From positions 166,780,001 to 166,844,000 of the forward strand of contig OZ038378.1 of assembly GCA_964036045.1 (NCBI GenBank): a DNA stretch of 64,000 nucleotides, written 5' to 3'. The notes under the pieces were generated by a model, which saw nothing but the letters and a program-made list of their open reading frames with translations, did no database searches and was not told where the DNA came from. The stretch comes from Eutreptiella sp. 'Long Island Sound 2002'. Lineage: Eukaryota; Protista; Euglenida. This document shows, one piece after another, positions 6,301 through 62,268 of the stretch. The number at the start of each line of letters is the position of its first letter. The stretch's first letter is position 1. Made by a program: the position numbers and the translations under genes.

Positions 6301-6796
6301 GGTTCGCGTGCTGCTTTGCACCTCCAAGGTGCACATCGGAACTGGTCACGTGTGGTGGTTGACATTTGTACCAATGATGTCTTTGGCTGCAGTCAAACAT
6401 GTGCATTCACGAAGACCCGCATTGTTGGCCGTTGCTCCGGGTGAACTCCATCCGCTTTCACTTTGGCGGTTGGCACTTTACTTGGGACACACTCGCTGCA
6501 AAGAAAAAGTGCAATAAAACCCAAAATGGAATCTCTCATCAACAACAATTTGTTCCAACTAGTACATAGCAAGCGATAAGCTCATTGGAATGAGACCCAC
6601 AAATTGGGGAATGCAACTCAATTTGCAATAGAGAGGGTCCCAACCCTTCATGCCCTACTAGAACTTGGAGGGAGGGTCATCCAAGTGCCACTCATCCTAG
6701 TACACGAACCATTGCGCGGCGGCCCCATGACACCACACAGCCCAAGCCCCCCCCATCCCCCCTCCCATGGCTCGGTGAGCTCCGTGGTATCTCAAG

Positions 6797-6905
6797 GGCA
6801 AAAAGCGTGTTAACACGGCCGCTTAACATACGGGTGAAAAGCACTCCCCCTCCCCCCTTTGTTGTGTTAACACAGCCTCAAAACGGAGGCAAAAAGTACC
6901 ACCCC
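6797..6905 (+). repeat. GTGTTAACAC-unit repeat module (inverse of 23065-23188 and 19785-19880)
   Basis: gggcaaaaagcgtgttaacacggccg...gttgtgttaacacagcc is the reverse complement of ggctgtgttaacacaac...cggccgtgttaacacgctttttgccc at 23101-23187. Confidence 0.8.
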
Positions 6906-6942
6906 CGTTTGTCCCCCTTGTGGCAAAACAAGAAGATGGGTG

Positions 6943-7290
6943 GTGTTGTGTTGTGTTGTGTTGTGTTGTGTTGTGTTGTGTTGTGTTGTGTTGTGTTGTG
7001 TCGTGTTGTGTTGTGTTGTGTTGTGTTGTGTTGTGTTGTGTTGTGTTGTGTTGTGTCGTTTTGTGTTGTGTTGTGTTGTGTTGTGCAGTGTAGCGTTGTG
7101 CTGTCAACACAAGACAACTTAACTTAACACCACAAAACGCAATACGACACAAAAGTAAACACAACACAAAACACAACACAACATAGCTCAACACAACACA
7201 AACAAGTAAACACAACACAAACACAACAAAATGCAACACAACAAAATGCTACACAACGCAACGCAACACGACACGACACAACACAACACA
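6943..7290. repeat. (TTGTG)n pentanucleotide microsatellite followed by a degenerate inverted (CAACA)n tract
   Basis: Near-perfect (ttgtg)n at 6943-7085, then degenerate (caaca)n at ~7100-7290. Confidence 0.95.
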
Positions 7291-8932: not shown

Positions 8933-9499
8933 GGTATGGTGTTGTTGTCGTTGCTAGAATTTCGACATTTGCTGCCTCAAAACAAACCATCAGATTTGAG
9001 CGAAAGGTGGACAAATCGAAGGTCCCACGCCTCTTTTAAAACGATACACTACTTCAAGCAACTTCGAAGCACAAGGAGCAGATCCAAATCTTCCAATCGG
9101 CAAAAGCGCTGGTCCACAGTCAAATGGGTTGGGAGCAGGACTATGATTGCCCTGCACTGAATGAAGCTGTGTCAACATGTACTGCAAGTGCAACAGGCCC
9201 GTGGCGTGAGAACATTTACAGGCTGCGCGCGCTTGAAACTCTCGCGAAAACTGGTGTGCCGCCCGGTGACGGTATGCAGACTGCGGCCCTAGCAGACTGC
9301 GAAAGACTGCGCGCGAACATGCGACACGCGCATTTACGACAACCGAAAAAACGACTGCAACTGATCTACTGCAACTGATCTTCTGCTAAAAGGCGACAAG
9401 GATGTTTTGAACCGTTCTGCAGCCCAAATTTATAAAATTATTTTACTCTACTGCAACAGATTATTTTATCGCCAGATAAGGGAACGATACCTTACTGGT

Positions 9500-10421
9500 A
9501 AATCCACTCCCTCCTACTCATTTTCAACTCCCTCCTACTCATTTTCAACTCCCTCCAAGTCAAAATCCACTCCCTCCTACTCATTTTCAACTCCCCCCTG
9601 CTCATTTTCAACTCCCTCCAAGTGAAAATCCACTCCCTCCTACTCATTTTCAACTCCCCCCTGCTCATTTTCAACTCCCTCCAAGTGAAAATCCACTCCC
9701 TCCTACTCATTTTCAACTCCCTCCTACTCAGTTTCAACTCCCTCCAAGTGAAAATCCACTCCCTCCTACTCATTTTCAACTCCCTCCTACTCATTTTCAA
9801 CTCCCCCCTGCTCATTTTCAACTCCCTCCAAGTGAAAATCCACTCCCTCCTACTCATTTTCAACTCCCTCCTACTCATTTTCAACTCCCTCCAAGTGAAA
9901 ATCCACTCCCTCCTACTCATTTTCAACTCCCTCCTACTCATTTTCAACTCCCCCCTGCTCATTTTCAACTCCCTCCAAGTGAAAATCCACTCCCTCCTAC
10001 TCATTTTCAACTCCCTCCTACTCATTTTCAACTCCCCCCTGCTCATTTCCAACCCCCTCCAAGTGAAAATCCACTCCCTCCTACTCATTTTCAACTCCCT
10101 CCTACTCATTTTCAACTCCCCCCTGCTCATTTCCAACCCCCTCCAAGTGAAAATCCACTCCCTCCTACTCATTTTCAACTCCCTCCTACTCATTTTCAAC
10201 TCCCCCCTGCTCATTTTCAACCCCCTCCAAGTGAAAATCCACTCCCTCCTACTCATTTTCAACTCCCTCCTACTCATTTTCAACTCCCTCCAAGTGAAAA
10301 TCCACTCCCTCCTACTCATTTTCATCTCCCTGCTGCTCATTTTCAACTCCCCCCTGCTCATTTTCAACTCCCTCCAAGTGAAAATCCACTCCCTCCTACT
10401 CATTTTCAACTCCCTCCTACT
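9500..10421 (+). repeat. 21-bp-unit subterminal minisatellite, left arm of the MULE (~44 units, 3 main variants)
   Basis: Units ctcctactcattttcaactcc, ctccaagtgaaaatccactcc and cccctgctcattttcaactcc. Reverse-complement units occur at ~13217-13270, 13375-13545 and 13895-13970. Confidence 0.95.
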
Positions 10422-10725
10422 CACACACAAGTGTCCCCCCACCGATCCAACCATCGACTTGCACACTATTGTTGTCACTGGAAATTCCGTCCCTCACCTG
10501 CCCTTGCACACTTGGCACGAAGAAAGCATTGTTCCATCTTTTTTTGTGCAATGTGCAAAAGAATGTGTAAAACAATGTGCAAGAGATGTGCTTCCCGATG
10601 ATGAAAGTAGTATACATTGTGGAGCCGTAGCTCAAAACTGGGGGCCATGGAGGCATAACCCAACCTTACACAGGCGAACCGTGAAGGCATGGAACATAAA
10701 CTCAGACTTGAAATTTGAAATGTCC

Positions 10726-12789
10726 TTAGTTCTTCGACACTTGAGCCCGCCACTCCCAAAGCTGCTTACACTGATGCAACTCAGCTGGCGAAAGTTGTTC
10801 CCCACATGCAGCCCGAGCATACAACTGAGCCAAGCGAGTATCAACCGAGTCAGCCGAGTCAACCATATTGTGAATGTGTGCATGCAATTGATCATTATAC
10901 GCGGCCTGCTGCGCACTCAGGCCCCCAGGAGCCTGATTCACGGTGGTTAGCGCATCTGAAAGCTCAAGGGCAGCATTCAGCTCTTCCTTCAGCGGCGGAC
11001 CGCTACCCCTACCCTGACCCCTACCTCTTCCCTTTGTAGCACCCTTTGGACCATCCCCTCGCTTAGCGGCCTTCCTGACAGTTGGCTGCACGGTTCGCTT
11101 GGCGGCCACCGGCGGGGGAACAGGTCGTGGTGCTTGTGCACCTGCCACATGGACCTGTGTGGAGGAGGCTCGCATGTCCACAAATTGGTTCAGTAGCCTC
11201 TCCTCTTCTTCGAGAAAGGCCCCTGCATCCTGTCCCTGGTCGGAAAGATGAGTTGCCACTCGATCCACATTATTTATATATTGACGCATCCGGGACTGCA
11301 GGTTCCCAAGGGAGCGGACAATCTGCTCGCGTTTCGTTCTGGCTGGCAAATCAGCCCACGAGGAGATGTCGGTCAATATAATGTCATCGTCTGTAGCATG
11401 GATTGCCACGGGTACCTGCACTGTGGGTAGGGGGAGGCGTTGGCTGCTGCATTTGGCACTGACAAGGACCTGAGTTGCAGTCTGAAATTGTTTTAAAATA
11501 AAAATTGGATTGAACAACCCAAGATGGAAGCCGACTGAAGATGACCGATGATGCAAAACAGCAAAATAGTGACGACATGGATGCCCGACTCGGACAGCAA
11601 GTCCACAACTACACCAAAACTTCGTATAGGCACCATCCTCAGCCAATGGCTCGAACAGACAAATGTGTTCACGCGGCCAAAGAGCAGGGTCATCCCCTAA
11701 ATCTTCCCCCCGTGGTGCAACGAGGCCGTTCAAATGAGCCTCGTACAGCCGTCGGCTATCCCCACAAAGGACGTCTTTCGCCCCATTGATTCTCTGAATG
11801 ACACTGATGTCAAACCTCTGAGCCCACAGCACCAGTTTCCGATACCGTTTTTTAACGACGGCCTCATCGGCCCCACGCGGCAGACCTAGCAGTTCATGAG
11901 CCCACGGACGGCTCATGTCAAGCTGCTCCAAAACGGGTTGGCGGGCATCGTGGGTATCCTCCCACCCTACTTGTGCCTGCACTCGGGCCCAAAGATCGTC
12001 CTTGTTTCGCAAGGAGAGGAAAGAGATTGCTGTCTGGGTGAGCTCGCCCCGCTCTTCGGCCTCCTGGAGGAAAAAATCCTGCACCTTTTTTCGAAAAGGA
12101 GAGTCCCCTAAGGATGCGACCCACGTTTCCAATTTTTGGATACAGGCACGGAGTTCTATTTTCTCCGTGCACTTGTGGATCTGTCTCTTTACCTCATCCC
12201 AATCTTGGGACAGATCTATATCACCGATACTAGACGGCCCCGATGAAGCCGTCGAAGATTGAGAAGGTTGTGAGGTTTGTTGGCTTGACGTAGGCGTCAA
12301 AGTAAGAGGGGTAGAAGGGGTGGGGAGCTCTGGTGAAGAGGACGTTTGGGAGGTGAACTCGCCTAGATCCGGCATGTCCAGATTTGGGGGTGTTTGCGAA
12401 ATTCCTTCGTCTTCCGCATCGTCCACCATCACCTCTGCTTCTGGGTCAGGTATGGCCTCGGCTGCAACCGGTTGGTCTGACGGCTGGGATGGGTTAGGCT
12501 TCGGGTCAGGCTTCGGGTCAGGCTTCGCGCTTTGGGACTCAGGTTTGGGTGTGGAGATGGGCGCAGAGGTTAGTACTTGGTGCCCACCCTCGGGCGTGAG
12601 TGTTTGTACCTCGGCTTGCGAGGCAAAGGAGACGCGCCGCTTCCTGTGCTTTTGTGGGCCAGGCACGCTCCCCATTAAATCCATCAGAGATGGCCCTTCC
12701 GCTGCCCTGGCTGCAGCAAATGCCGTTGCCTTGGCCTTCTTTTCATCGGAGATTGGTGTCTTCGGTGGCATTCTGGAAGTGCACGTCAT
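10726..12789 (-). CDS. 687-aa MULE-borne protein: disordered N-terminus, J-domain-like fold lacking HPD, SWIM zinc finger, basic C-terminal region
   Basis: WAHELLGLPRGADEAVVKKRYRKLVLWAQRFDISVIQRINGAKDVLCGDSRRLYE (DnaJ helix pattern); FWCSCGLAVRVGHPCRHYFAVL (CxC...CxH SWIM). Long stop-free ORF inside the TIRs. Confidence 0.75.
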   Translation of the reverse strand: MTCTSRMPPKTPISDEKKAKATAFAAARAAEGPSLMDLMGSVPGPQKHRKRRVSFASQAEVQTLTPEGGHQVLTSAPISTPKPESQSAKPDPKPDPKPNPSQPSDQPVAAEAIPDPEAEVMVDDAEDEGISQTPPNLDMPDLGEFTSQTSSSPELPTPSTPLTLTPTSSQQTSQPSQSSTASSGPSSIGDIDLSQDWDEVKRQIHKCTEKIELRACIQKLETWVASLGDSPFRKKVQDFFLQEAEERGELTQTAISFLSLRNKDDLWARVQAQVGWEDTHDARQPVLEQLDMSRPWAHELLGLPRGADEAVVKKRYRKLVLWAQRFDISVIQRINGAKDVLCGDSRRLYEAHLNGLVAPRGEDLGDDPALWPREHICLFEPLAEDGAYTKFWCSCGLAVRVGHPCRHYFAVLHHRSSSVGFHLGLFNPIFILKQFQTATQVLVSAKCSSQRLPLPTVQVPVAIHATDDDIILTDISSWADLPARTKREQIVRSLGNLQSRMRQYINNVDRVATHLSDQGQDAGAFLEEEERLLNQFVDMRASSTQVHVAGAQAPRPVPPPVAAKRTVQPTVRKAAKRGDGPKGATKGRGRGQGRGSGPPLKEELNAALELSDALTTVNQAPGGLSAQQAAYNDQLHAHIHNMVDSADSVDTRLAQLYARAACGEQLSPAELHQCKQLWEWRAQVSKN

Positions 12790-12921
12790 GATCCAGGCGA
12801 TTGGGGTTGAAAGCCGGTGCGTGCATCACAACTGAGGGCTTGGGTTGTCACACACGGAACGCAAAACGTGTCAACCTGTACCAACTCCCTTCAAGCGGAA
12901 GTCCACACCCTCCTTCTCAAT

Positions 12922-13890
<969 letters not shown>

Positions 13891-16233
13891 ATATTTCACT
13901 TGGAGGGAGTAGAAATTGAGTAGAAGGGAGTGGATATTCACTTGGAGGGAGTTGAAATTGAGGGGGAGGGAGTCGATTTGCGCACAGCGCTAAACGCGTT
14001 CAAAACAGCGAAGTAAAGGGCAACGCTGGCCAATCACACATCTGTCAGTAATTAATAATAAGTGACAGAGTGATCAGAAGGTGAAATTCGAACTAATTAG
14101 AACAGGAACATAAAATTCATACCTTTCTGTCAGTTGCGGTGGTTTTTTCAGTTACGCGTGTCGCATGTTCGTGCGCAGTCTTTCGCAGTCTGCTAGGGCC
14201 GCAGTCTGCATACCGTCACCGTGTGCCGCCCACCACCCATCAAAACATATCACTTGACTTCCCCAGTCGCGAATTGCGCGGCATGAGTACTGGAACAGTT
14301 GCGGTATTATGAATTGCACATCACTGGCCCTTGGGGCCCCTGCATTCGCATCTGCAGGCGGGCCCATTACATCTTCATCCATCATCATCTGATCATCATC
14401 ATGAGATATCTGCGCCTGCCACGGACCGCATATCCTGTGGCGGCGCGAGTCGGGCCCGCAGACACATCCCAACTGTTCCGCTTTTTCGCGCGCTTTGTCT
14501 TGCCGAAATCTGCCGCTTATATGTTTCTGTGCCGTTTTTATTGTATACGCGGTAGTGTTGGCGGTCTTCATATTTGCCATCCCACAAAGGATTGAACCTT
14601 CAACATTTTTTTGACCCCAAAGCACCCAAAATGTATCAAGGGGAGAATGTGGCATATTCATATTGGAAATCCCATCAACCTGTGATTTTTTTCAGATCAT
14701 ACATGCAAAAGTTGTTTTGACCGGGGAATAATTGCTTGAATGTGGCATGTGCTCCAAGTGTAATCTGCTAAGGGGAAAGCGTGAAATTTGGTCGTAACAA
14801 TGGTTTGTTGGCTTGGTTAGTGCTATGCGTGTCGTGGTTGGGATCGGGTTTTCTTGGTGCTTCGTGATGCTGCACTTCCAGTCTTGCCTTCGTCGTACCC
14901 GTAATCTTGTAGTTGGTTGCATGGTAGATGTGCCCCACCTATCCTTCTTTACTCCTTGCCTGCAAGTTTCTTTTGTTCCTTCTTTCTTTGCGTACCTTCA
15001 TTCGTGCTCATTCTTTATTCCCCATTTGTTTAGGCAAAGACTTTCCATTATTCCACGAGCCCAAAGCTCCGTTCCTTTTGTAGACGGAACCATGGACAAG
15101 AAAAATGAGCACCATCACGCTCCATGCACCATGCCCGTTACGTGTCTCTTTGTTTCACTCAAAGTCTCCTTGATCGTCTCAGCCCGTCTCAGCCTATGGT
15201 CCAGTGAGCAGTGTTTGCCTTTGTCTCGCTTTTTGCTTGCTCGTTTTGACAATTTGTAGTGCAAATTGTCCACCCACTTCCAAACTGGTTGGAATACTGC
15301 AATTGCACGTTGGCAAATTGTCATACATATCGGTTGTCATGCTTTTGCAAACACAAAACACACGTTGATGAGTCGTGACCTATTATCTTCTCACAAAAGG
15401 GTTGCACTCAAGTTGTCAAATGAATACGTTGGGGGGTAAGCAAAGCAAAGAAGGCGTCCAACAACTAAAACAGAGCACAAAGCAAGCACAGAGAGACAGT
15501 GCAAACAAAGCAACTGCTCATTTCAAGCACATGCATATAAGCCGCAAATTGATCAAATGCACCACTGGCACTGAAGCATGATCACTCGAGTATTCCCACT
15601 CTTTGCCCTTCACCTTTCGCTGCTTCTTTTCTCTCTAAAAACATGAACAATGTATGCACTTGAACCTAAAAAAGATAAGTTTGTGGGTTGGAACTGGTGC
15701 ACCATGGAGGTCAGGGGGTGGGCCGCCTCAGGGATGAAGCACAAGTGGGGGGGCGGGGCGGTGAGGAACAGTGCTTGTCTTGGGGATGTAGGACCCTGAG
15801 GGTAGGGGATATATGCAGCATGGGCATCGGCGAGTGGAGAGGTGTATGGTGTGCCGGGTTGGCACTGCCCATGAACACTTGCGGTATGGATATGTGCAAA
15901 TGCCCACCACATGCCACACTTTGTGTATTGTGTGTAGCCAACCTTGATGCATCCTTGTAGCATGAAGACCATGGCCATCACAGGAGTTTGCTTGCTTTTT
16001 GTCCGCGACTTCTATGGCCAAAACACCACATGAGTAGATGCAAACAACGTGGTTGATTGGGTTTCTCATTTTCCGCGCTTTGTGTACGCATGACCCTTGG
16101 ACAAGTGGCGCCTTGACAAAGTACAACACATGTATAACACCATGTGCAATCCCTTGTAAGTCCTCTTTCTAGTGATTTGGGCGTGTGGGATGCCGAGGCC
16201 ATCTGAAAATTGCGTCATCGGACAAAATTGGTG

Positions 16234-22892: not shown

Positions 22893-23188
22893 ACAACACA
22901 ACACAACACAACACAACACAAGACAACACAACACAAGACAACACAACACAACACAACACAACACAACACAACACAACACAACACAACACAACACAACACA
23001 ACACAACTCAACTCCACGCAACTCAACTCAATGTCCCCGTCTTCTGGTGTTGGCGGGTAGGTGTAGGCAGAGGGGGGGGGGTATTTTTCACCTCTGTCTT
23101 GGGGCTGTGTTAACACAACACAGTATGGGATGGAGGGGTATTTTTCACCACCGTGTTGGCCGGCCGTGTTAACACGCTTTTTGCCCCG
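22893..23188. repeat. (CAACA)n microsatellite plus GTGTTAACAC module; mirror image of 6797-7085
   Basis: (caaca)n at 22893-23020, then the two-unit gtgttaacac module ending gctttttgcccc at 23188. Confidence 0.9.
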
Positions 23189-54411: not shown

Positions 54412-56511
54412 ATGCAGCTGCCGGCGTACGTTCACCAGTGCACCTCCGCCGCGGCGCTGGGCGCCGAGCCTGCCCCTCTGGGCCGCAGCCTGAAGGCCAC
54501 GCAGACCCTCAGCGCTTGGACGACGGTCCTCACGGAGCCCCCTGTGCTGTTCGCGCCTTTTGCCGAGGGGTACTGTGCGGCGTGCGGGAGTCTGCACCCG
54601 GGGCCATGTGCCGCGTACCGACTGCTGGAGGCGTGTCTGGAGGCGCTGCCGCGGGCCGTGCACAGTGACCACCACGTGTTTGCCATGGCGCTGCAGTACG
54701 TGGCCCTGGCGTATCTTGCGGGGGCCGGGGGTGCGCGCGGGGGCGTGGGGCCCGGGAACAAGGGCGACGAGGGCGTCGATCAAGGCGTTGGGCCTGGGGA
54801 CGACTGTGCGCAAGCGACCGCCGCCGGCAGCGGAGGTGGTACAAGGACTTCGTCCGGCACCTGCACCGACATGGGCACCGGCGCGGGCACCGGCGCGGGC
54901 ACCGGGGGAGCTGCTGCCACTGACACTGCCGTCGGTCCGGGCTCCTCGACATCCCTCTGCACCGCGCCTCCTCTGGCCCTCGTGGACCGCCTCGTGGGCC
55001 ACCCTCTGCCGCAGGCGGACGCAGACGCCTGCCAGGGGCTCTGGGCCCTGCTTCCCCCGGCGCTGCAGCGTGCCGCCCCGCCGCCGACCCTCTCGCGGAC
55101 CGCCGCACGAATCCGGGCCAACTGTGTCTACTGCGACGCCGAGGGGCACGAGGGCTTTGCGGTGTTTGCCGCGACCGCGATGCTGAATCACGACTGCGAC
55201 CCGAACTGCTACCTCACCTTTGCCCCGATGCCGGGGTCGGGCCCGCGCGTCGCCGTGCGCACGCGCACCCCCGTCGTCCCCGGCGCCGCGCTGACGATCT
55301 CGTACCTGCCCCAGGGCGGCGTCCTGTGGCCCCGGGCGCAGCGGTTGCGGAGGCTGCGGGGCGCGTGGGCGTTCACGTGCACGTGCTCGTGCTGCTGCAC
55401 GCCCGCGGACCGCGTGCGCGCGTTCGCGTGCGACGCGTGCGGGGGGGTCGTTCTCCCCGAGCCGGACTCAGCAGGGCCCGAACGCGCGGTGGAGTGTGGC
55501 ACCGACGCCGTGGGTGTGACCACGTTTGTGGACAATTCTCAAAGCCGTGGCGCTGCGCATGAGGTCGATGACGAGGGCCCGGCGGAAACGCGCCGGGGCG
55601 GTGGTGCGGGGAGCACCCAGAAAGACGGCCCGGGTGGCTGGTGCCCCACATACCCGGCGTCCTCCGTGAACCGCCCCCCTGACCTCCCCCACGCCTCAGA
55701 TCCCCCCTCTCATCCACCACCTCCCCCCAGCCCGAGCCCCAGCCCACACCCGACCCCCGACTCGAACCCGCAGCTCCTTCCCCCCACCCCGACCCCTGCC
55801 TCCGACCGCGCCCAGGCGCCGGACCACCGCCCCACGGCACCGCCCTTGGCCCCGTGGCGGTGCCAGCGGTGCCAGCGTCCCGCGTCCCCGACCGCCCGGA
55901 CCACCTGCCTCGACGCCGAGGCCGCCCTCGGCGCCGCTGTCGAGGCCTGGCGGGCCCAGCCCGCGAGCACCTCCGTCGACGGGGAGCAGGCCCCGCCCCC
56001 CACGCGCCTGCCCGTCAGTGCCGCCCCGCTGCACTCGGCCCATCACCTGCACTTGGCGCTGGCGGAGGAGGTGCTGGCGGCTGCCATGGGGCGCCGGGAC
56101 GTTGAGGAGGCGGAGCGGGCGCTGAGGGTGCTGCAGGAGGGCGAGGCCCAGGTGCTGGGGGGAGTGCACCCGAACACGGGCTACCACATGTACGGCGTGG
56201 GGGTGGCGCTGCTGCAGCTGAGCGCGGGCAACGCGGAGGCGGCGGCGGCGCATCTTCGGACCGCTCGGGACGCGCTCCTGCGGCTGCATCCGGAGGACGA
56301 AGCCACCCTCGAGGGCATTGAGGGGCAGCTGCGGCGCCTGGAGGAGGGGGATGAGGAGTCAGAGAGAGAAAGCGATCAAGAGGGGGGGCAGGAGGAGGAG
56401 GAGGAGGAGGAGGAGGAGGAGGAGGAGGAGGAGGAGGCGGAGAAAGAAGGGGGGGGCGAGGAGGAGGAGGAGGAGGAGGAGGAAGGGTTGGCGGTGGAAG
56501 AGGAGGGTTGA
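54412..56511 (+). CDS. SMYD-like SET-domain lysine methyltransferase (699 aa), uninterrupted ORF, poly-Glu tail
   Basis: GRSLKATQTL...VLTEPPVL (SET-N), partial MYND-like CAACG, LNHDCDPNC, ALTISY, WAFTCTCSCC (post-SET), CDAC...CQRC, helical TPR-like C-terminus (LGGVHPNTGY). Confidence 0.9.
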   Translation: MQLPAYVHQCTSAAALGAEPAPLGRSLKATQTLSAWTTVLTEPPVLFAPFAEGYCAACGSLHPGPCAAYRLLEACLEALPRAVHSDHHVFAMALQYVALAYLAGAGGARGGVGPGNKGDEGVDQGVGPGDDCAQATAAGSGGGTRTSSGTCTDMGTGAGTGAGTGGAAATDTAVGPGSSTSLCTAPPLALVDRLVGHPLPQADADACQGLWALLPPALQRAAPPPTLSRTAARIRANCVYCDAEGHEGFAVFAATAMLNHDCDPNCYLTFAPMPGSGPRVAVRTRTPVVPGAALTISYLPQGGVLWPRAQRLRRLRGAWAFTCTCSCCCTPADRVRAFACDACGGVVLPEPDSAGPERAVECGTDAVGVTTFVDNSQSRGAAHEVDDEGPAETRRGGGAGSTQKDGPGGWCPTYPASSVNRPPDLPHASDPPSHPPPPPSPSPSPHPTPDSNPQLLPPTPTPASDRAQAPDHRPTAPPLAPWRCQRCQRPASPTARTTCLDAEAALGAAVEAWRAQPASTSVDGEQAPPPTRLPVSAAPLHSAHHLHLALAEEVLAAAMGRRDVEEAERALRVLQEGEAQVLGGVHPNTGYHMYGVGVALLQLSAGNAEAAAAHLRTARDALLRLHPEDEATLEGIEGQLRRLEEGDEESERESDQEGGQEEEEEEEEEEEEEEEAEKEGGGEEEEEEEEEGLAVEEEG
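56390..56500 (+). repeat. (GAG)n trinucleotide tract encoding the poly-Glu tail of the SET protein
   Basis: gaggaggag runs in frame with the ORF. Confidence 0.95.
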
Positions 56512-58626: not shown

Positions 58627-59961
58627 GTGCACCTCGTCTGTATCTTAGACTCACTGAGTTTTTGGTTTTTTAACCCCACGTGGGTCACTGCATGCCTGAG
58701 CCAAGTCGCACGATTGGAATTAGACAATAACGGAAAGGCAGACAGTGAATTGCAACAGGCGCATCCTTCTGGGCCAAATTCGAGGGCAGCACAGATCACG
58801 GACGACGCACAGCGTGAACAAGCAGTCATCGCGCTCCGAAAATGGCGCCAGTGGACTGAAGGCCCGTACGCAACCCTCGTGGGGAAAGGACTGCACAAGG
58901 AGGAAATAGCGGAGTGGGCAGTGCAGCTGGAGGAAGACATGGTAGAGCAGGAGGTCCCAGATGGAGCTGTCGGCGCGCTGTGCACCAGAGCGGGACTCCA
59001 GCACCTCGAAAAGGACGAAGCCATCGCAGCTCTTGCGGTGTACCGTGTGCGAAAGAACCTCCAGCCCGACTTCCTCAACGGCACCTTTATCGAGTGGAAG
59101 GACGCCACGAACGCAGGCGGCGAACCGGGAGAACAAGAAGGAGCGGCACGCGAGGCGATTACCACACCGAGCCCGGGGCAAGGGGAATCTGGAGTCGCAG
59201 CATTCCATGAACTCGTAGCCCGACTGGCTGCAGCGCGTGTGGAGAACGACGCACTACGCAAAATATTGGTGCCCCAGCTCAATGAAGAGGCACTGAACAA
59301 ACTGCTTGGTGAGCACCTCCCATACGCCTGGATGGGAAGTTTACTGACAGGCCTGAAGTCCTATAAAGAAAAAAACGAGCAGTGGTTCACTGAGGAGCTG
59401 GCAATTCTAATCTGGAACACTGTCAACGAGGAGCTGAGAGCGAAGCGGCAAGGCATGAAGTCAACGAACCCCCAAAACCAACCCCAGGGGATGCAGATGG
59501 TCCCTCACCAACAGGGAGGCGCCATGGCGGGAGGGGGTACAACTCTTCACACCCCCCCAGGCAATTGCTTTAAATGCGGGGGGCCTGGCCACTGGGCTAC
59601 TAACTGCCCCCTCGCCACTCAAAGGCGGGGGGGGAGGGTTCAAATGATGGGACAGCAGCAGGTCCTAGTCTCGTCGAAGGGGGTCGCATTCGATATGGCT
59701 GGCCCCCCCCCTGGCCAGTGTCGTGTCTGCGGGGGGAACCACTGGGAACAGTACTGCCCGCATGCGAACCCCCAGGGAGTGCCACAGATGTTCCAAAGCG
59801 CCACAGGAAATGCAGCACAACCCCACCCCCAGCAATCCTTTCAGGGTGCCAGTCCACCCCCCGCCGCGGAGGGAGTCCCCCAATTCCCCAACGCGCAGGC
59901 CCAACAACACATGCAGTCCATTTACAGAGAAATGGGGTTCCAAGTTGGAAACCAGGCATAG
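58627..59961 (+). CDS. gag: Gag-like protein with two zinc knuckles (true start uncertain)
   Basis: CFKCGGPGHWATNC (CX2CX4HX4C) and CRVCGGNHWEQYC (CX2CX3HX4C); predicted coiled-coil central region; Gln/Pro-rich end; TAG at 59959-61. Confidence 0.85.
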   Translation: MHLVCILDSLSFWFFNPTWVTACLSQVARLELDNNGKADSELQQAHPSGPNSRAAQITDDAQREQAVIALRKWRQWTEGPYATLVGKGLHKEEIAEWAVQLEEDMVEQEVPDGAVGALCTRAGLQHLEKDEAIAALAVYRVRKNLQPDFLNGTFIEWKDATNAGGEPGEQEGAAREAITTPSPGQGESGVAAFHELVARLAAARVENDALRKILVPQLNEEALNKLLGEHLPYAWMGSLLTGLKSYKEKNEQWFTEELAILIWNTVNEELRAKRQGMKSTNPQNQPQGMQMVPHQQGGAMAGGGTTLHTPPGNCFKCGGPGHWATNCPLATQRRGGRVQMMGQQQVLVSSKGVAFDMAGPPPGQCRVCGGNHWEQYCPHANPQGVPQMFQSATGNAAQPHPQQSFQGASPPPAAEGVPQFPNAQAQQHMQSIYREMGFQVGNQA

Positions 59962-61972
59962 GGGCACGCGGGGGGAGGGTCAGGCAGTGGCACCGTGTAC
60001 ATGGCAGATGTGTCCGTCGCCATACGAACATACTTCTCCATTTCGTCCGATGAATGGTCTGACGGCCCACTGCAACTGGCAGCAAGGGCGATTACATCAG
60101 GATCCAGGGAAGCATACATGTCTGCCCTCCGTCAGTTCGCCAAAAACAGCGAATCATCCGATACTCTTGAGGTCGCACTCAACAAGAGAATCTGCGCAAT
60201 CGCCAGGCGAAAGCGGGGTAGATCTGCAGCAACCGGACTGGTGTCCGCGCTCCGAGTGCTGGAGAAACTCAGGCTCTTACCCCCTTCAGTCCTCCAACTC
60301 CACTGGCTGCAAGTGGAGGCCATTGCACGCATCACAGCACCCCATGCCCCCCCGAGACCCTACGGTACGGCACAACACCTCGAGTTCCTCGGCAGGGCCC
60401 GTATCCACTGGGCGTGGCCCCGCCTGTTCTTCCTCGCGACTTGCGCAGTTGTCTTCAGAATGCGTAGCGGGGATTCGGAAAGCGTCTCGTGGGAAGGGAT
60501 CACCACCCCTGGGTGGATCGAGTTTTTCGATGAGAAACGTGGAAAAGAATGGGTGCAGTACCCACTCTCGCCCTTCCTTGAACAATGGAGGAAGTACGTA
60601 CTATCCCTTAAGCACCCCAACACCCCCCCCCAAAGCCCAGTCCTGCCAGGTGGCAGGAATGCACTGCGCAGCATCCAGAAAGAGTGCATGCAACACTGCC
60701 CCCTTGGGCACATCACATGGCATCCATGGGCACGCATGGCTGCAGCTGCATTCAGGATCCTGGGAGGAAAACTGGCCAGCCTGGCAGACTGGGGAAGGTG
60801 GAAGGACCTCAAACAGGCCAGGCACTATGCCAAGGCACCTGCAGACTGGTCCCTGCCTGAGTTCCTCTCCCTACCCTACCCTGAGAGCTTCACAGGCTTC
60901 CCTTCACGCGACATGGGAGGGGTATCCATCAGAACAAAAGATGTCTGGCCAAGGGAGGCCTGGGAAAAGCGAACAGGGCCCAGGAAACCCCCGCCGAAGC
61001 CAGCTCCCGAATCCGTCAAGCGCCAAAAGCCTCGGGGCACGGCCGGTGAAAACCGGGGCGCGAAGCCAAACCAGTCTGACTCATCTGAAGACTCCTCCTC
61101 TTCCGGAGACTCCTCAGATGAGGGCATGGAAGTGGACGAGGATACCACAAACCCCCCCCCACCCCCTGATGTGGCCGACGCCGGGGCAGGCACCACTGAA
61201 CCCGCTGCTGCGACAGCCCCCACTGAGGGAAGCAAAAACTGCCCCATCGTCCTGGATGACCCCAGAGATGGCATCGCCCCCCCCAAAGTGGGCCCCACAA
61301 GTCCTGATGCGGGGCGACCAGACGAGGGGCTCGACGGGGTGGCGGGGGAAGGAGCAGTTGAGGCAGAACCCACCCCAATGGTCGGCCCCAGAGAAGCGGA
61401 TCCCCAACCATCGGAGGGAACCACCACTGCAGACACCGGTTCCTCACTGGCCCCAGGGGATGGATGTCTCACGCCACAGGCGCAGATACGGTCAGGACCC
61501 CCCCCTGCAGAAAGAGCAATGGACAGGCCCCCCTCCCCCACCCCCCAGACCCCACCCCCAGCCCCCCCGAGAGGGCCTCAGGGCATGCCCCCCCCCCCCC
61601 CCCCAGACTGCCCCGAGGGCAGTCCCAGCCCAGGCAGAAAACGCCCACACAAGCGACTTTTTGCCCTCGACAAGCGCCCCCACGTGCCCAGTGGTGAAAC
61701 ACCGTACCCAGCAGACAAGGTACCGATGGTACAGAATCCGCTGCCCCCACCTGAGCCACGAGACACGGCACCACACAGTGGCTATGACGTCTGTGCGCCT
61801 ATGCGGCACGGACGTTTCCTCCACTGGGTACCAGGACAAATGCTACTGCCAGCTCCTGGAGAGGCACCATGGCCCGATGATAAAGAGGATCGTGACCAGC
61901 CGACCCCGAATGATCACGACAACGGATTGTGCATGCAGGGGTGCCAGGGGTGCAGGAGAGAGACAACATTAA
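59723..61972 (+). CDS. Overlapping +1-frame ORF (749 aa from GTG; stop-free from 59669), S/P/R-rich, no recognised domain
   Basis: Open for 768 codons across the gag 3' end, the gag stop and the whole YR region. It terminates at TAA 61970-72, at the inferred right junction. Confidence 0.45.
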   Translation: MSAGGTTGNSTARMRTPRECHRCSKAPQEMQHNPTPSNPFRVPVHPPPRRESPNSPTRRPNNTCSPFTEKWGSKLETRHRGTRGEGQAVAPCTWQMCPSPYEHTSPFRPMNGLTAHCNWQQGRLHQDPGKHTCLPSVSSPKTANHPILLRSHSTRESAQSPGESGVDLQQPDWCPRSECWRNSGSYPLQSSNSTGCKWRPLHASQHPMPPRDPTVRHNTSSSSAGPVSTGRGPACSSSRLAQLSSECVAGIRKASRGKGSPPLGGSSFSMRNVEKNGCSTHSRPSLNNGGSTYYPLSTPTPPPKAQSCQVAGMHCAASRKSACNTAPLGTSHGIHGHAWLQLHSGSWEENWPAWQTGEGGRTSNRPGTMPRHLQTGPCLSSSPYPTLRASQASLHATWEGYPSEQKMSGQGRPGKSEQGPGNPRRSQLPNPSSAKSLGARPVKTGARSQTSLTHLKTPPLPETPQMRAWKWTRIPQTPPHPLMWPTPGQAPLNPLLRQPPLREAKTAPSSWMTPEMASPPPKWAPQVLMRGDQTRGSTGWRGKEQLRQNPPQWSAPEKRIPNHRREPPLQTPVPHWPQGMDVSRHRRRYGQDPPLQKEQWTGPPPPPPRPHPQPPREGLRACPPPPPQTAPRAVPAQAENAHTSDFLPSTSAPTCPVVKHRTQQTRYRWYRIRCPHLSHETRHHTVAMTSVRLCGTDVSSTGYQDKCYCQLLERHHGPMIKRIVTSRPRMITTTDCACRGARGAGERQH

Positions 61973-62268
61973 ACTCCCCACTGCTCACCACTCGGAAAGG
62001 AGTGCGCCTAGATGCGATCCTCGTCTCCGACACAATCTGGCACGCATTGACTCCCACAGGGTGCTCCACTCGCACCTACCCATCCGCCGGTGACCACAAA
62101 GCAGTGGCGGCAATCTTTGGCTCTGCCATCCAAGATGGATCCGACCACCGGGAGTACACTGGTTTCCGTGCAACACTGGCACACGAGCACCTTCAATACA
62201 TTTCAGAAGCACATGACCAAGTGGTCTCGGCAGACGACCCTGTCCGGGTCCCCACAGGAGCGGTATGA
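59995..62268 (+). CDS. DIRS-class tyrosine recombinase (core ~60080-60830) with a long acidic/Pro-rich tail, running in frame into the LINE APE C-half
   Basis: SGSREAYMSALRQF (SAM-like N-domain), FRMRSGD (R), FFDEK (K), WHPWARMAAA (HxxR box variant), WGRW, ARHY (Y nucleophile position). Confidence 0.85.
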   Translation: MYMADVSVAIRTYFSISSDEWSDGPLQLAARAITSGSREAYMSALRQFAKNSESSDTLEVALNKRICAIARRKRGRSAATGLVSALRVLEKLRLLPPSVLQLHWLQVEAIARITAPHAPPRPYGTAQHLEFLGRARIHWAWPRLFFLATCAVVFRMRSGDSESVSWEGITTPGWIEFFDEKRGKEWVQYPLSPFLEQWRKYVLSLKHPNTPPQSPVLPGGRNALRSIQKECMQHCPLGHITWHPWARMAAAAFRILGGKLASLADWGRWKDLKQARHYAKAPADWSLPEFLSLPYPESFTGFPSRDMGGVSIRTKDVWPREAWEKRTGPRKPPPKPAPESVKRQKPRGTAGENRGAKPNQSDSSEDSSSSGDSSDEGMEVDEDTTNPPPPPDVADAGAGTTEPAAATAPTEGSKNCPIVLDDPRDGIAPPKVGPTSPDAGRPDEGLDGVAGEGAVEAEPTPMVGPREADPQPSEGTTTADTGSSLAPGDGCLTPQAQIRSGPPPAERAMDRPPSPTPQTPPPAPPRGPQGMPPPPPPDCPEGSPSPGRKRPHKRLFALDKRPHVPSGETPYPADKVPMVQNPLPPPEPRDTAPHSGYDVCAPMRHGRFLHWVPGQMLLPAPGEAPWPDDKEDRDQPTPNDHDNGLCMQGCQGCRRETTLNSPLLTTRKGVRLDAILVSDTIWHALTPTGCSTRTYPSAGDHKAVAAIFGSAIQDGSDHREYTGFRATLAHEHLQYISEAHDQVVSADDPVRVPTGAV

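Follow-up and report, generated by a model that had tools for sequence, protein, structure and literature searches.

A chimeric open reading frame in an internally deleted Mutator-like element of the euglenid Eutreptiella

The element, its chimeric reading frame and its surroundings

The window analysed here is a stretch of 64,000 nucleotides from the genome of Eutreptiella sp. 'Long Island Sound 2002' (assembly GCA_964036045.1, contig OZ038378.1, positions 166,780,001 to 166,844,000), and positions given without a prefix refer to it. At 9264-14221 it carries a Mutator-like element (MULE) of 4,958 bp, with an open reading frame (ORF) at 10726-12789 of the minus strand, in which a diverged J-like domain precedes a SWIM-type zinc-finger signature. 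When this copy is compared with its relatives in the 2.28-Gb assembly that holds the window, there is little doubt that it is a non-autonomous, internally deleted derivative of a very young, high-copy MULE and that the chimeric protein is a by-product of an in-frame deletion.

The frame is open through 687 codons, as the initial annotation had stated, and consists of two parts with different parents. Residues 1-375 are identical to the N-terminal 375 residues of an 807-aa protein, named here ORF1 (locus L061). The ORF1-derived part as a whole, aa 1-376, is located at 11662-12789 (minus strand) and agrees with the ORF1 of L061 in 375 of the 376 residues. Residues 377-687 are an exact match to the last 311 residues of the 1097-aa transposase of the family, which is available as a public protein of the same sequence (P0005). 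With the stop codon, this transposase-derived part occupies 10726-11661 (minus strand; 100% identity to aa 787-1097 of P0005) and includes the SWIM signature. Codon 376, which lies between the two parts, overlaps the microhomology of the junction. It encodes isoleucine (ATT, not GTT), and because ATT is also present in at least one other copy of ORF1, this codon is best taken as a polymorphism among the copies and not as a mutation introduced at the junction.

The same composition is found at the nucleotide level. Along 2,401 nt, positions 9263-11663 agree at 100% with locus L065 (674-3074), a copy on C16, and positions 11660-14221 are 99.3% identical to a copy on C10 (L061; both by BLAST). 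The two arms overlap by the tetramer TTTG at 11660-11663, which is present at that point in both parents, and the overlap together with a three-way nucleotide comparison sets the deletion junction at this 4-bp microhomology. Compared with the C10 copy, which is 18,233 bp long, the 4,958 bp of the window copy lack 13,275 bp.

The junction was used as a DNA query in two probes of 301 and 80 nt centred on it, and the best 40 of about 450 candidates were scored. Among these, a full-length match occurs at the window's own position only, and the other matches cover one half of the probe. Similarly, in a protein search of the genome, all 687 residues are recovered at 100% only from the window itself. 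Matches restricted to residues 1-377 occur at more than 60 places, with 96-99% identity and usually within an open frame of 819 codons, and these copies continue into a region similar to the Ulp1 protease.

Only two matches were obtained with Pfam on the chimeric ORF, DnaJ and SWIM, both of them below threshold, and a transposase or DDE domain was not detected by Pfam in the 687 residues. The match to SWIM has an E value of 1 and 9.5 bits against a cutoff of 19.6 bits. The signature itself, CxC-x9-CxH, sits where it is expected, and C393, C395, C405 and H407 can be read from the translation (11569-11613, minus strand), in line with the CSC...PCRH motif of the initial annotation. MULEs commonly, albeit not universally, have a SWIM zinc finger on the C-terminal side of the DDE domain. 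In the full transposase of this family the signature has this canonical placement, downstream of the MULE domain. The earlier statement that a DDE core is missing is correct for the window copy only; longer copies carry the domain PF10551.

Elements of the Mutator superfamily produce target-site duplications (TSDs) of about 8-11 bp, typically 9, and their terminal inverted repeats (TIRs) are often long. The window element has both features. A perfect 9-bp TSD, TGTGCCGCC, is located at 9255-9263 and again at 14222-14230, and the TIRs are 67 nt long. When compared by script, the left TIR (9264-9330, plus strand) is identical at 66 of the 67 positions to the reverse complement of the right TIR (14155-14221, minus strand). 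The similarity ends there, as only 10 of the next 23 positions are identical. A stock inverted-repeat finder was swamped by microsatellites and the TIRs were recovered by dust-filtered BLAST, which gave a single unambiguous pair, with arms near 9252-9330 and 14155-14235. The start base of the left TIR is shared by more than 40 matches in a search of the genome. The TIRs and the TSD proposed initially are verified by this comparison. The recent insertion proposed with them is also upheld by the near-100% identity of both arms to other copies, which together with the perfect TSD indicates that the window copy was inserted recently.

Repeats with a 21-bp unit are located inward of both TIRs. The left subterminal array (9503-10423, plus strand; periods of 63, 84 and 147 in Tandem Repeats Finder) contains 32 exact copies of the core ACTCCCTCC at 9506-10409. 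The right subterminal region (13246-13975, minus strand; Tandem Repeats Finder and script) has the motif in inverted orientation, with 10 exact cores at 13246-13965, interspersed with microsatellites of the types (AT)n and (ATAT)n (12946-13217, 13557-13894). In its forward orientation, the core has no copy in the window outside the element. The TIRs and the inverted 21-bp arrays are likely to be the binding sites of the transposase.

Outside the element, an inverted pair of about 290 nt with 82% identity (6796-7084 and 22893-23186, 16 kb apart) flanks the MULE insertion. The pair may be a different repeat present twice, or it may mark the termini of an older and larger element. An ORF of 699 aa at 54412-56511 (plus strand), within a stretch of 72% G+C, has a SET domain (Pfam, E=1.6e-7). 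It is followed at 58627-59961 (plus strand) by an ORF of 444 aa with a CCHC zinc knuckle (Pfam) and then by overlapping frames of about 750 aa, including 59723-62268 (plus strand), for which Pfam gave no match. The frames of 58627-62268 may be the gag-like region of a retroelement. The SET domain and the zinc knuckle are the only Pfam matches on the ORFs neighbouring the element, and an Rfam scan of the window gave no match.

The parent family and its accessory gene

The C10 copy extends from its ORF1-side end to the end of the other TIR over 18,233 bp (26562985-26581217). Its ORF1 is intact (26564413-26566836), and its transposase gene, at 26576465-26579752, runs as one frame without interruption and is 100% identical to P0005. 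The copy is apparently autonomous. In full copies, the two genes share a strand, with ORF1 on the upstream side and a gap of about 9.6 kb between them. The family is most likely a two-gene MULE, in which the single-exon transposase would bind DNA, provide the DDE catalysis and contribute the SWIM finger. Its assignment to the Mutator superfamily is supported by the MULE DDE domain PF10551, which in the transposase of L065 lies just upstream of the SWIM signature (E=5e-17, 62.6 bits against a cutoff of 27.6 bits). A search for a DDE domain in longer copies had been proposed as a check in the initial annotation, and L065 is such a copy, with the domain at the place foreseen there. The N-terminal region of the transposase resembles, by eye only, a WRKY/FAR1 DNA-binding domain.

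Further observations concern parts of the parent that are absent from the window. Within aa 1-170 of P0005, a leading region of about 100 aa (MALPDRTLVLCVP...) is found ahead of the putative DNA-binding domain and by eye resembles a small beta-grasp or ubiquitin-like module. The spacer between ORF1 and the transposase gene, as read at 4803-7914 of L061, is full of alternating minisatellite arrays with units of 53 and 42 bp. The 42-bp unit reads as a AAKLEAEKKAAADE-type repeat in one frame, and some of the 53-bp arrays are oppositely oriented.

In full copies, the 807 residues of ORF1 consist of a disordered N-terminus, the J-like domain and a domain similar to Ulp1/C48 proteases. The region of about 440-640 matches yeast Ulp1 (1euv) in phmmer with E=0.04, and the His, Asp, Gln and Cys motifs are aligned. 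The catalytic His, Asp and Cys and the oxyanion Gln follow the canonical order of Ulp1, as HW..., ...DSL and Q-x5-C line up with 1euv and, in the profile search, also with 6dg4. A family profile has as its top two matches an Ulp1-like SUMO protease and SENP7 (E=0.09 and 0.19), and 28 of 30 language-model neighbours are Peptidase_C48 clusters (0.95-0.96). Pfam showed no match of ORF1 to C48 (PF02902) at E<=1, and the AlphaFold2 (AF2) model of the protease region is unusable, with a mean predicted local distance difference test (pLDDT) score of 37.6. On balance, the region is likely to be an Ulp1/C48 protease.

A HMMER search with residues 190-700 of ORF1 against 1.84 billion representatives returned 17 matches, mostly fragments of the same family. 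The catalytic residues of the protease are kept in P0023 and lost in P0028. A paralogue at C1:15873332-15873901 encodes P0023, which is 43% identical to ORF1 in the protease part, and low-copy divergent paralogues of the P0024 family are located at C2:133160945-133161967, C4:75570575-75571597 and C11:49977683-49978273.

The J-like domain comprises residues 297-355 (11725-11901, minus strand; HELLGLP...YRKL...RINGAKDVL...) and has no HPD tripeptide. In Pfam the DnaJ match stays below the gathering score of PF00226 (E=0.012, 16.2 bits against a cutoff of 27.8 bits) and covers aa 298-321, that is, profile positions 3-26 of 63. When the PDB was searched at E<=10 with a profile of ORF1 and its relatives, 12 of the 15 matches were J domains, the best of them at E=0.0065-0.025. 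The profile alignment to DNAJC5 extends across helices II and III and leaves a gap of 7 residues at the position of the HPD loop. The AF2 model of aa 190-379 was made from a shallow alignment of 6 rows and has a mean pLDDT of 56.8, rising to 75-84 over aa 297-355, where four helices are predicted. With this model, essentially every one of the top rows (about 45) of Foldseek against the PDB was a J domain, with probabilities up to 1.0, E values of 0.13-1 and superpositions of 1.5-2.5 Å root-mean-square deviation over 62-66 residues. In VIA-align against 48,161 chains, almost all of the top 22 rows were J or J-like domains, including Tim16 (Z 5.6-9.0). The nearest language-model cluster of the segment is also a DnaJ cluster, with a score (0.88) that serves as a lead only. 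The four helices and the antiparallel hairpin of helices II and III, which define the J fold, are found in the AF2 model and in the fold searches, and the pseudo-J-domain of the initial annotation finds agreement in both fold and profile.

The HPD tripeptide is absent from ORF1 and also from the homologues P0024 and P0032, and the loop is shorter than that of DNAJC5 by about 7 residues. The motifs LGLP...YR.L and (I/L)N.A(K/R)(D/E)V are kept in all of the three proteins. P0024, encoded at C2:133160945 of the same genome, is 39% identical to ORF1 in the N-terminal and J-like part, and P0032, for which this genome gave no match at E<=1e-20, is 46% identical over the matched stretch. We are rather confident that the domain is a diverged J-like domain, and since the HPD tripeptide of the helix II/III loop is needed to stimulate the ATPase of Hsp70, it would be unable to act as a canonical activator of Hsp70.

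The homologues at 38-46% identity, which comprise a second, low-copy family of the same genome and at least one sequence not found in it, keep the J-like motifs. This conservation suggests a selected role of ORF1, for instance a de-SUMO-like action on host silencing factors or on the transposase, with the J-like domain as a docking module and not an activator of Hsp70. The protease would remove SUMO-like modifiers from proteins of the host or of the element, and the HPD-less domain would probably serve in interactions. It is conceivable, although we propose it only tentatively, that the family represents an undescribed protist lineage of MULEs with a conserved accessory gene whose protein joins a J-like domain lacking HPD to an Ulp1-like protease with its catalytic residues intact.

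Copies of the family and origin of the chimera

ORF1 is matched at 115 or more places of the genome, and at least 27 copies of the transposase have no stop codon. Sixteen intact ORF1 loci were extracted, which correspond to 14 distinct copies, since L040/L061 and L058/L062 are the same loci. They diverge by 0-0.45% from their consensus. The variants of these 16 loci are 25 non-synonymous and 10 synonymous, near the neutral site ratio of 3.2:1. Because the copies are nearly identical, the dN/dS comparison proposed in the initial annotation has no power in either direction. The near identity of the copies and the stop-free transposase genes indicate that the family is very young and probably active now. 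Queried with the transposase, a word-index protein search gave no more than three matches (93-96% identity). It is uninformative on distant relatives, because P0005, to whose cluster the best match belongs, is encoded exactly in this genome.

Deletions of different extent are found among the copies. The distance from the TIR to the start of ORF1 varies from about 2 to 18 kb, and other copies appear to have further lesions, as their ORFs are 321-737 codons long. The C16 copy (L065 2137-6718; C16:13511936-13516517) is a third independent deletion derivative, in which ORF1 near codon 598, within the protease domain, is joined to the transposase near codon 173, so that the whole MULE domain is kept. 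An older copy on C15 (L066 4615-6819; C15:56970615-56972819), about 95-96% identical and with one in-frame TAA, gave an 81% match over residues 1-687 and was considered as an old copy of the same chimera. This was rejected, as the DNA shows an independent deletion. In L066, ORF1 near codon 268 is joined at an 8-bp microhomology to the transposase 306 nt upstream of the window breakpoint, that is, ORF1 is cut about 108 codons and the transposase about 102 codons earlier than in the window. Some other deletion derivatives are out of frame. Deletion derivatives commonly accompany an active DNA transposon in this way.

Regarding the window copy, a deletion of 13,275 bp between two TTTG tetramers has fused codon 375/376 of ORF1 in frame to codon 787 of the transposase. 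Lost with it are the C-terminal 432 codons of ORF1, including the protease, the whole spacer of 9.6 kb and, from the transposase, codons 1-786 with the DNA-binding and DDE parts. A deletion at such a short microhomology is the product expected of an interrupted gap repair after excision or of replication slippage, and either may have been its origin. Since both TIRs and both subterminal 21-bp arrays are kept, the many intact copies could still move this copy in trans, and it would then be a passenger that depends on them. The union of a J-like domain with a SWIM signature, without a catalytic core, is the product of internal deletion and, among the candidates scored, is confined to this copy. 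Read from the sequences, it is therefore an accident of deletion and not a natural protein architecture. That the fusion is in frame is unremarkable, because roughly one in three such deletions is in frame by chance, and the 687-aa chimera most likely is a by-product without selected function. Of the two origins considered initially, the capture of a chaperone domain by the transposase tail, perhaps as a regulator, finds no support as a natural protein architecture, given the unique, deletion-made junction. The other, a deletion product of a transposase family bearing a J domain, comes close and needs correction only in that the J-like domain belongs to the separate upstream ORF1.

Certain points weigh against the reading of the window copy as a deletion by-product. 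A second junction of this kind, if diverged, may have escaped the 40 best of the roughly 450 candidates that were scored, the junction is known from the assembly alone, so that an assembly collapse is formally possible, and the spacer of the full-length copy was read over about half of its 9.6 kb. Moreover, the chimeric ORF may be transcribed from the ORF1 promoter with some effect. In its strong form, this last point makes the chimera a functional regulator of the family, such as a dominant-negative or titrating protein with a SWIM finger and an oligomerisation tail, and truncated repressors of this kind are known in other DNA transposons (e.g., the KP protein of the P element). The fully open in-frame fusion, the retained ORF1 start with its upstream region and the retention of the whole SWIM signature with the C-terminal 311 aa of the transposase would suit such a protein. 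Nevertheless, we regard it as very unlikely: the chimera exists as a single copy whose junction is unique among the candidates scored, its halves are identical to their parents, which leaves no time for selection, and the other derivatives break elsewhere, in part out of frame. About one in three random deletions between ORFs of the same strand preserves the frame by chance. An artefact of the assembly, in which an 18-kb full-length copy was collapsed or misjoined, is hardly credible. The more than 100 near-identical copies and their long internal minisatellite arrays are indeed hard to assemble, but the junction lies at a 4-bp microhomology of two unrelated coding regions, outside any collapsible repeat, and the many other copies with independent internal deletions of varied extent indicate that derivatives are real in this family.

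An alternative that concerns the J-like segment and not the deletion is that it represents an unrelated small helical bundle, similar to a J domain by chance. All sequence scores are below threshold (16 against 27.8 bits in Pfam, and E=0.0065 at best in the PDB profile search), the Foldseek E values of 0.13-1 are weak, the VIA-align Z scores of 5.6-9 fall in the range that the tool flags as common for helical models, the AF2 alignment has its 6 rows only, and the HPD is missing along with about 7-9 residues of the loop. Five separate analyses, not all of them independent, nonetheless agree on the J family, and the motifs LGLP...(V/I)K..YRKL of helices I-II and IN.A.DVL of helix III are kept in relatives of 38-46% identity, which makes the chance resemblance unlikely. 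A diverged J-like domain in ORF1, carried into the chimera by an in-frame deletion, is the reading retained here.

Comparison with known systems

Internally deleted, non-autonomous derivatives are familiar from other DNA transposons, such as the dMuDR and Mu elements derived from MuDR and the Ds elements derived from Ac. Like them, the window copy keeps its TIRs and subterminal repeats, has lost internal coding sequence through a deletion at microhomology, belongs to many differently deleted siblings and depends on intact copies for its movement. It differs in that its deletion joins two genes in frame and leaves an intact-looking ORF of 687 aa. The window copy itself is thus ordinary, and the modest novelty lies in the accessory gene of the family. 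For annotation, it is a caution that a long, intact, TIR-flanked ORF with an unprecedented combination of domains can be a one-off in-frame deletion, which the comparison of copies resolves. The parent family is the more notable, with its 18-kb length, more than 100 copies of ORF1, at least 27 stop-free transposase genes, near-identical and probably active copies, and a gene for J-like and Ulp1-like domains. In a euglenid host, it is a candidate active DNA transposon in a lineage for which few have been described.

The architecture of the accessory gene may be undescribed for MULEs. A limited full-text search of the literature gave nothing relevant on J or DnaJ domains in MULEs, and for Ulp1 together with DnaJ it led only to the plant KI-MULEs. 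A broad survey of MULEs reports additional ORFs in some clades and does not mention a protease or DnaJ in them (PMC6446971).

Among the structural matches of the J-like domain are Tim16/Pam16 (2guz_B) and a 'pseudo DnaJ' domain (2cug), which share with it the four-helix J fold without an HPD tripeptide. In the domain described here the helix II/III loop is shortened and not only mutated, and the context is an accessory protein of a transposon. A specific sequence relationship to Tim16 was not detected.

The association of a SWIM-type signature with an Ulp1-like protease in a large, recently active DNA transposon recalls Zisupton, which reportedly has SWIM and an Ulp1-type SUMO protease in one transposase protein, an 8-bp TSD and a transposase that is not of the PF10551 type. 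The present family differs in its clear PF10551 domain, in its 9-bp TSD and in the placement of the protease in a separate gene.

The closest parallel within the Mutator superfamily is offered by the Kaonashi (KI) MULEs, known from Arabidopsis and other plants, in which peptidase C48/ULP-like domains occur (Hoen et al. 2006, as cited in PMC6117577). In both cases, following that citation, an element of the superfamily has an Ulp1-like C48 domain beside, or in place of, its transposase, with the limit that the C48 assignment in ORF1 is below the Pfam threshold. With respect to the Kaonashi elements as they are outlined there, the protease of the Eutreptiella family is encoded by a separate accessory gene of 807 aa, behind a J-like domain, and the transposase of the elements is intact. 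The host is not a plant, and the copies, with their divergence of 0-0.45%, look currently active.

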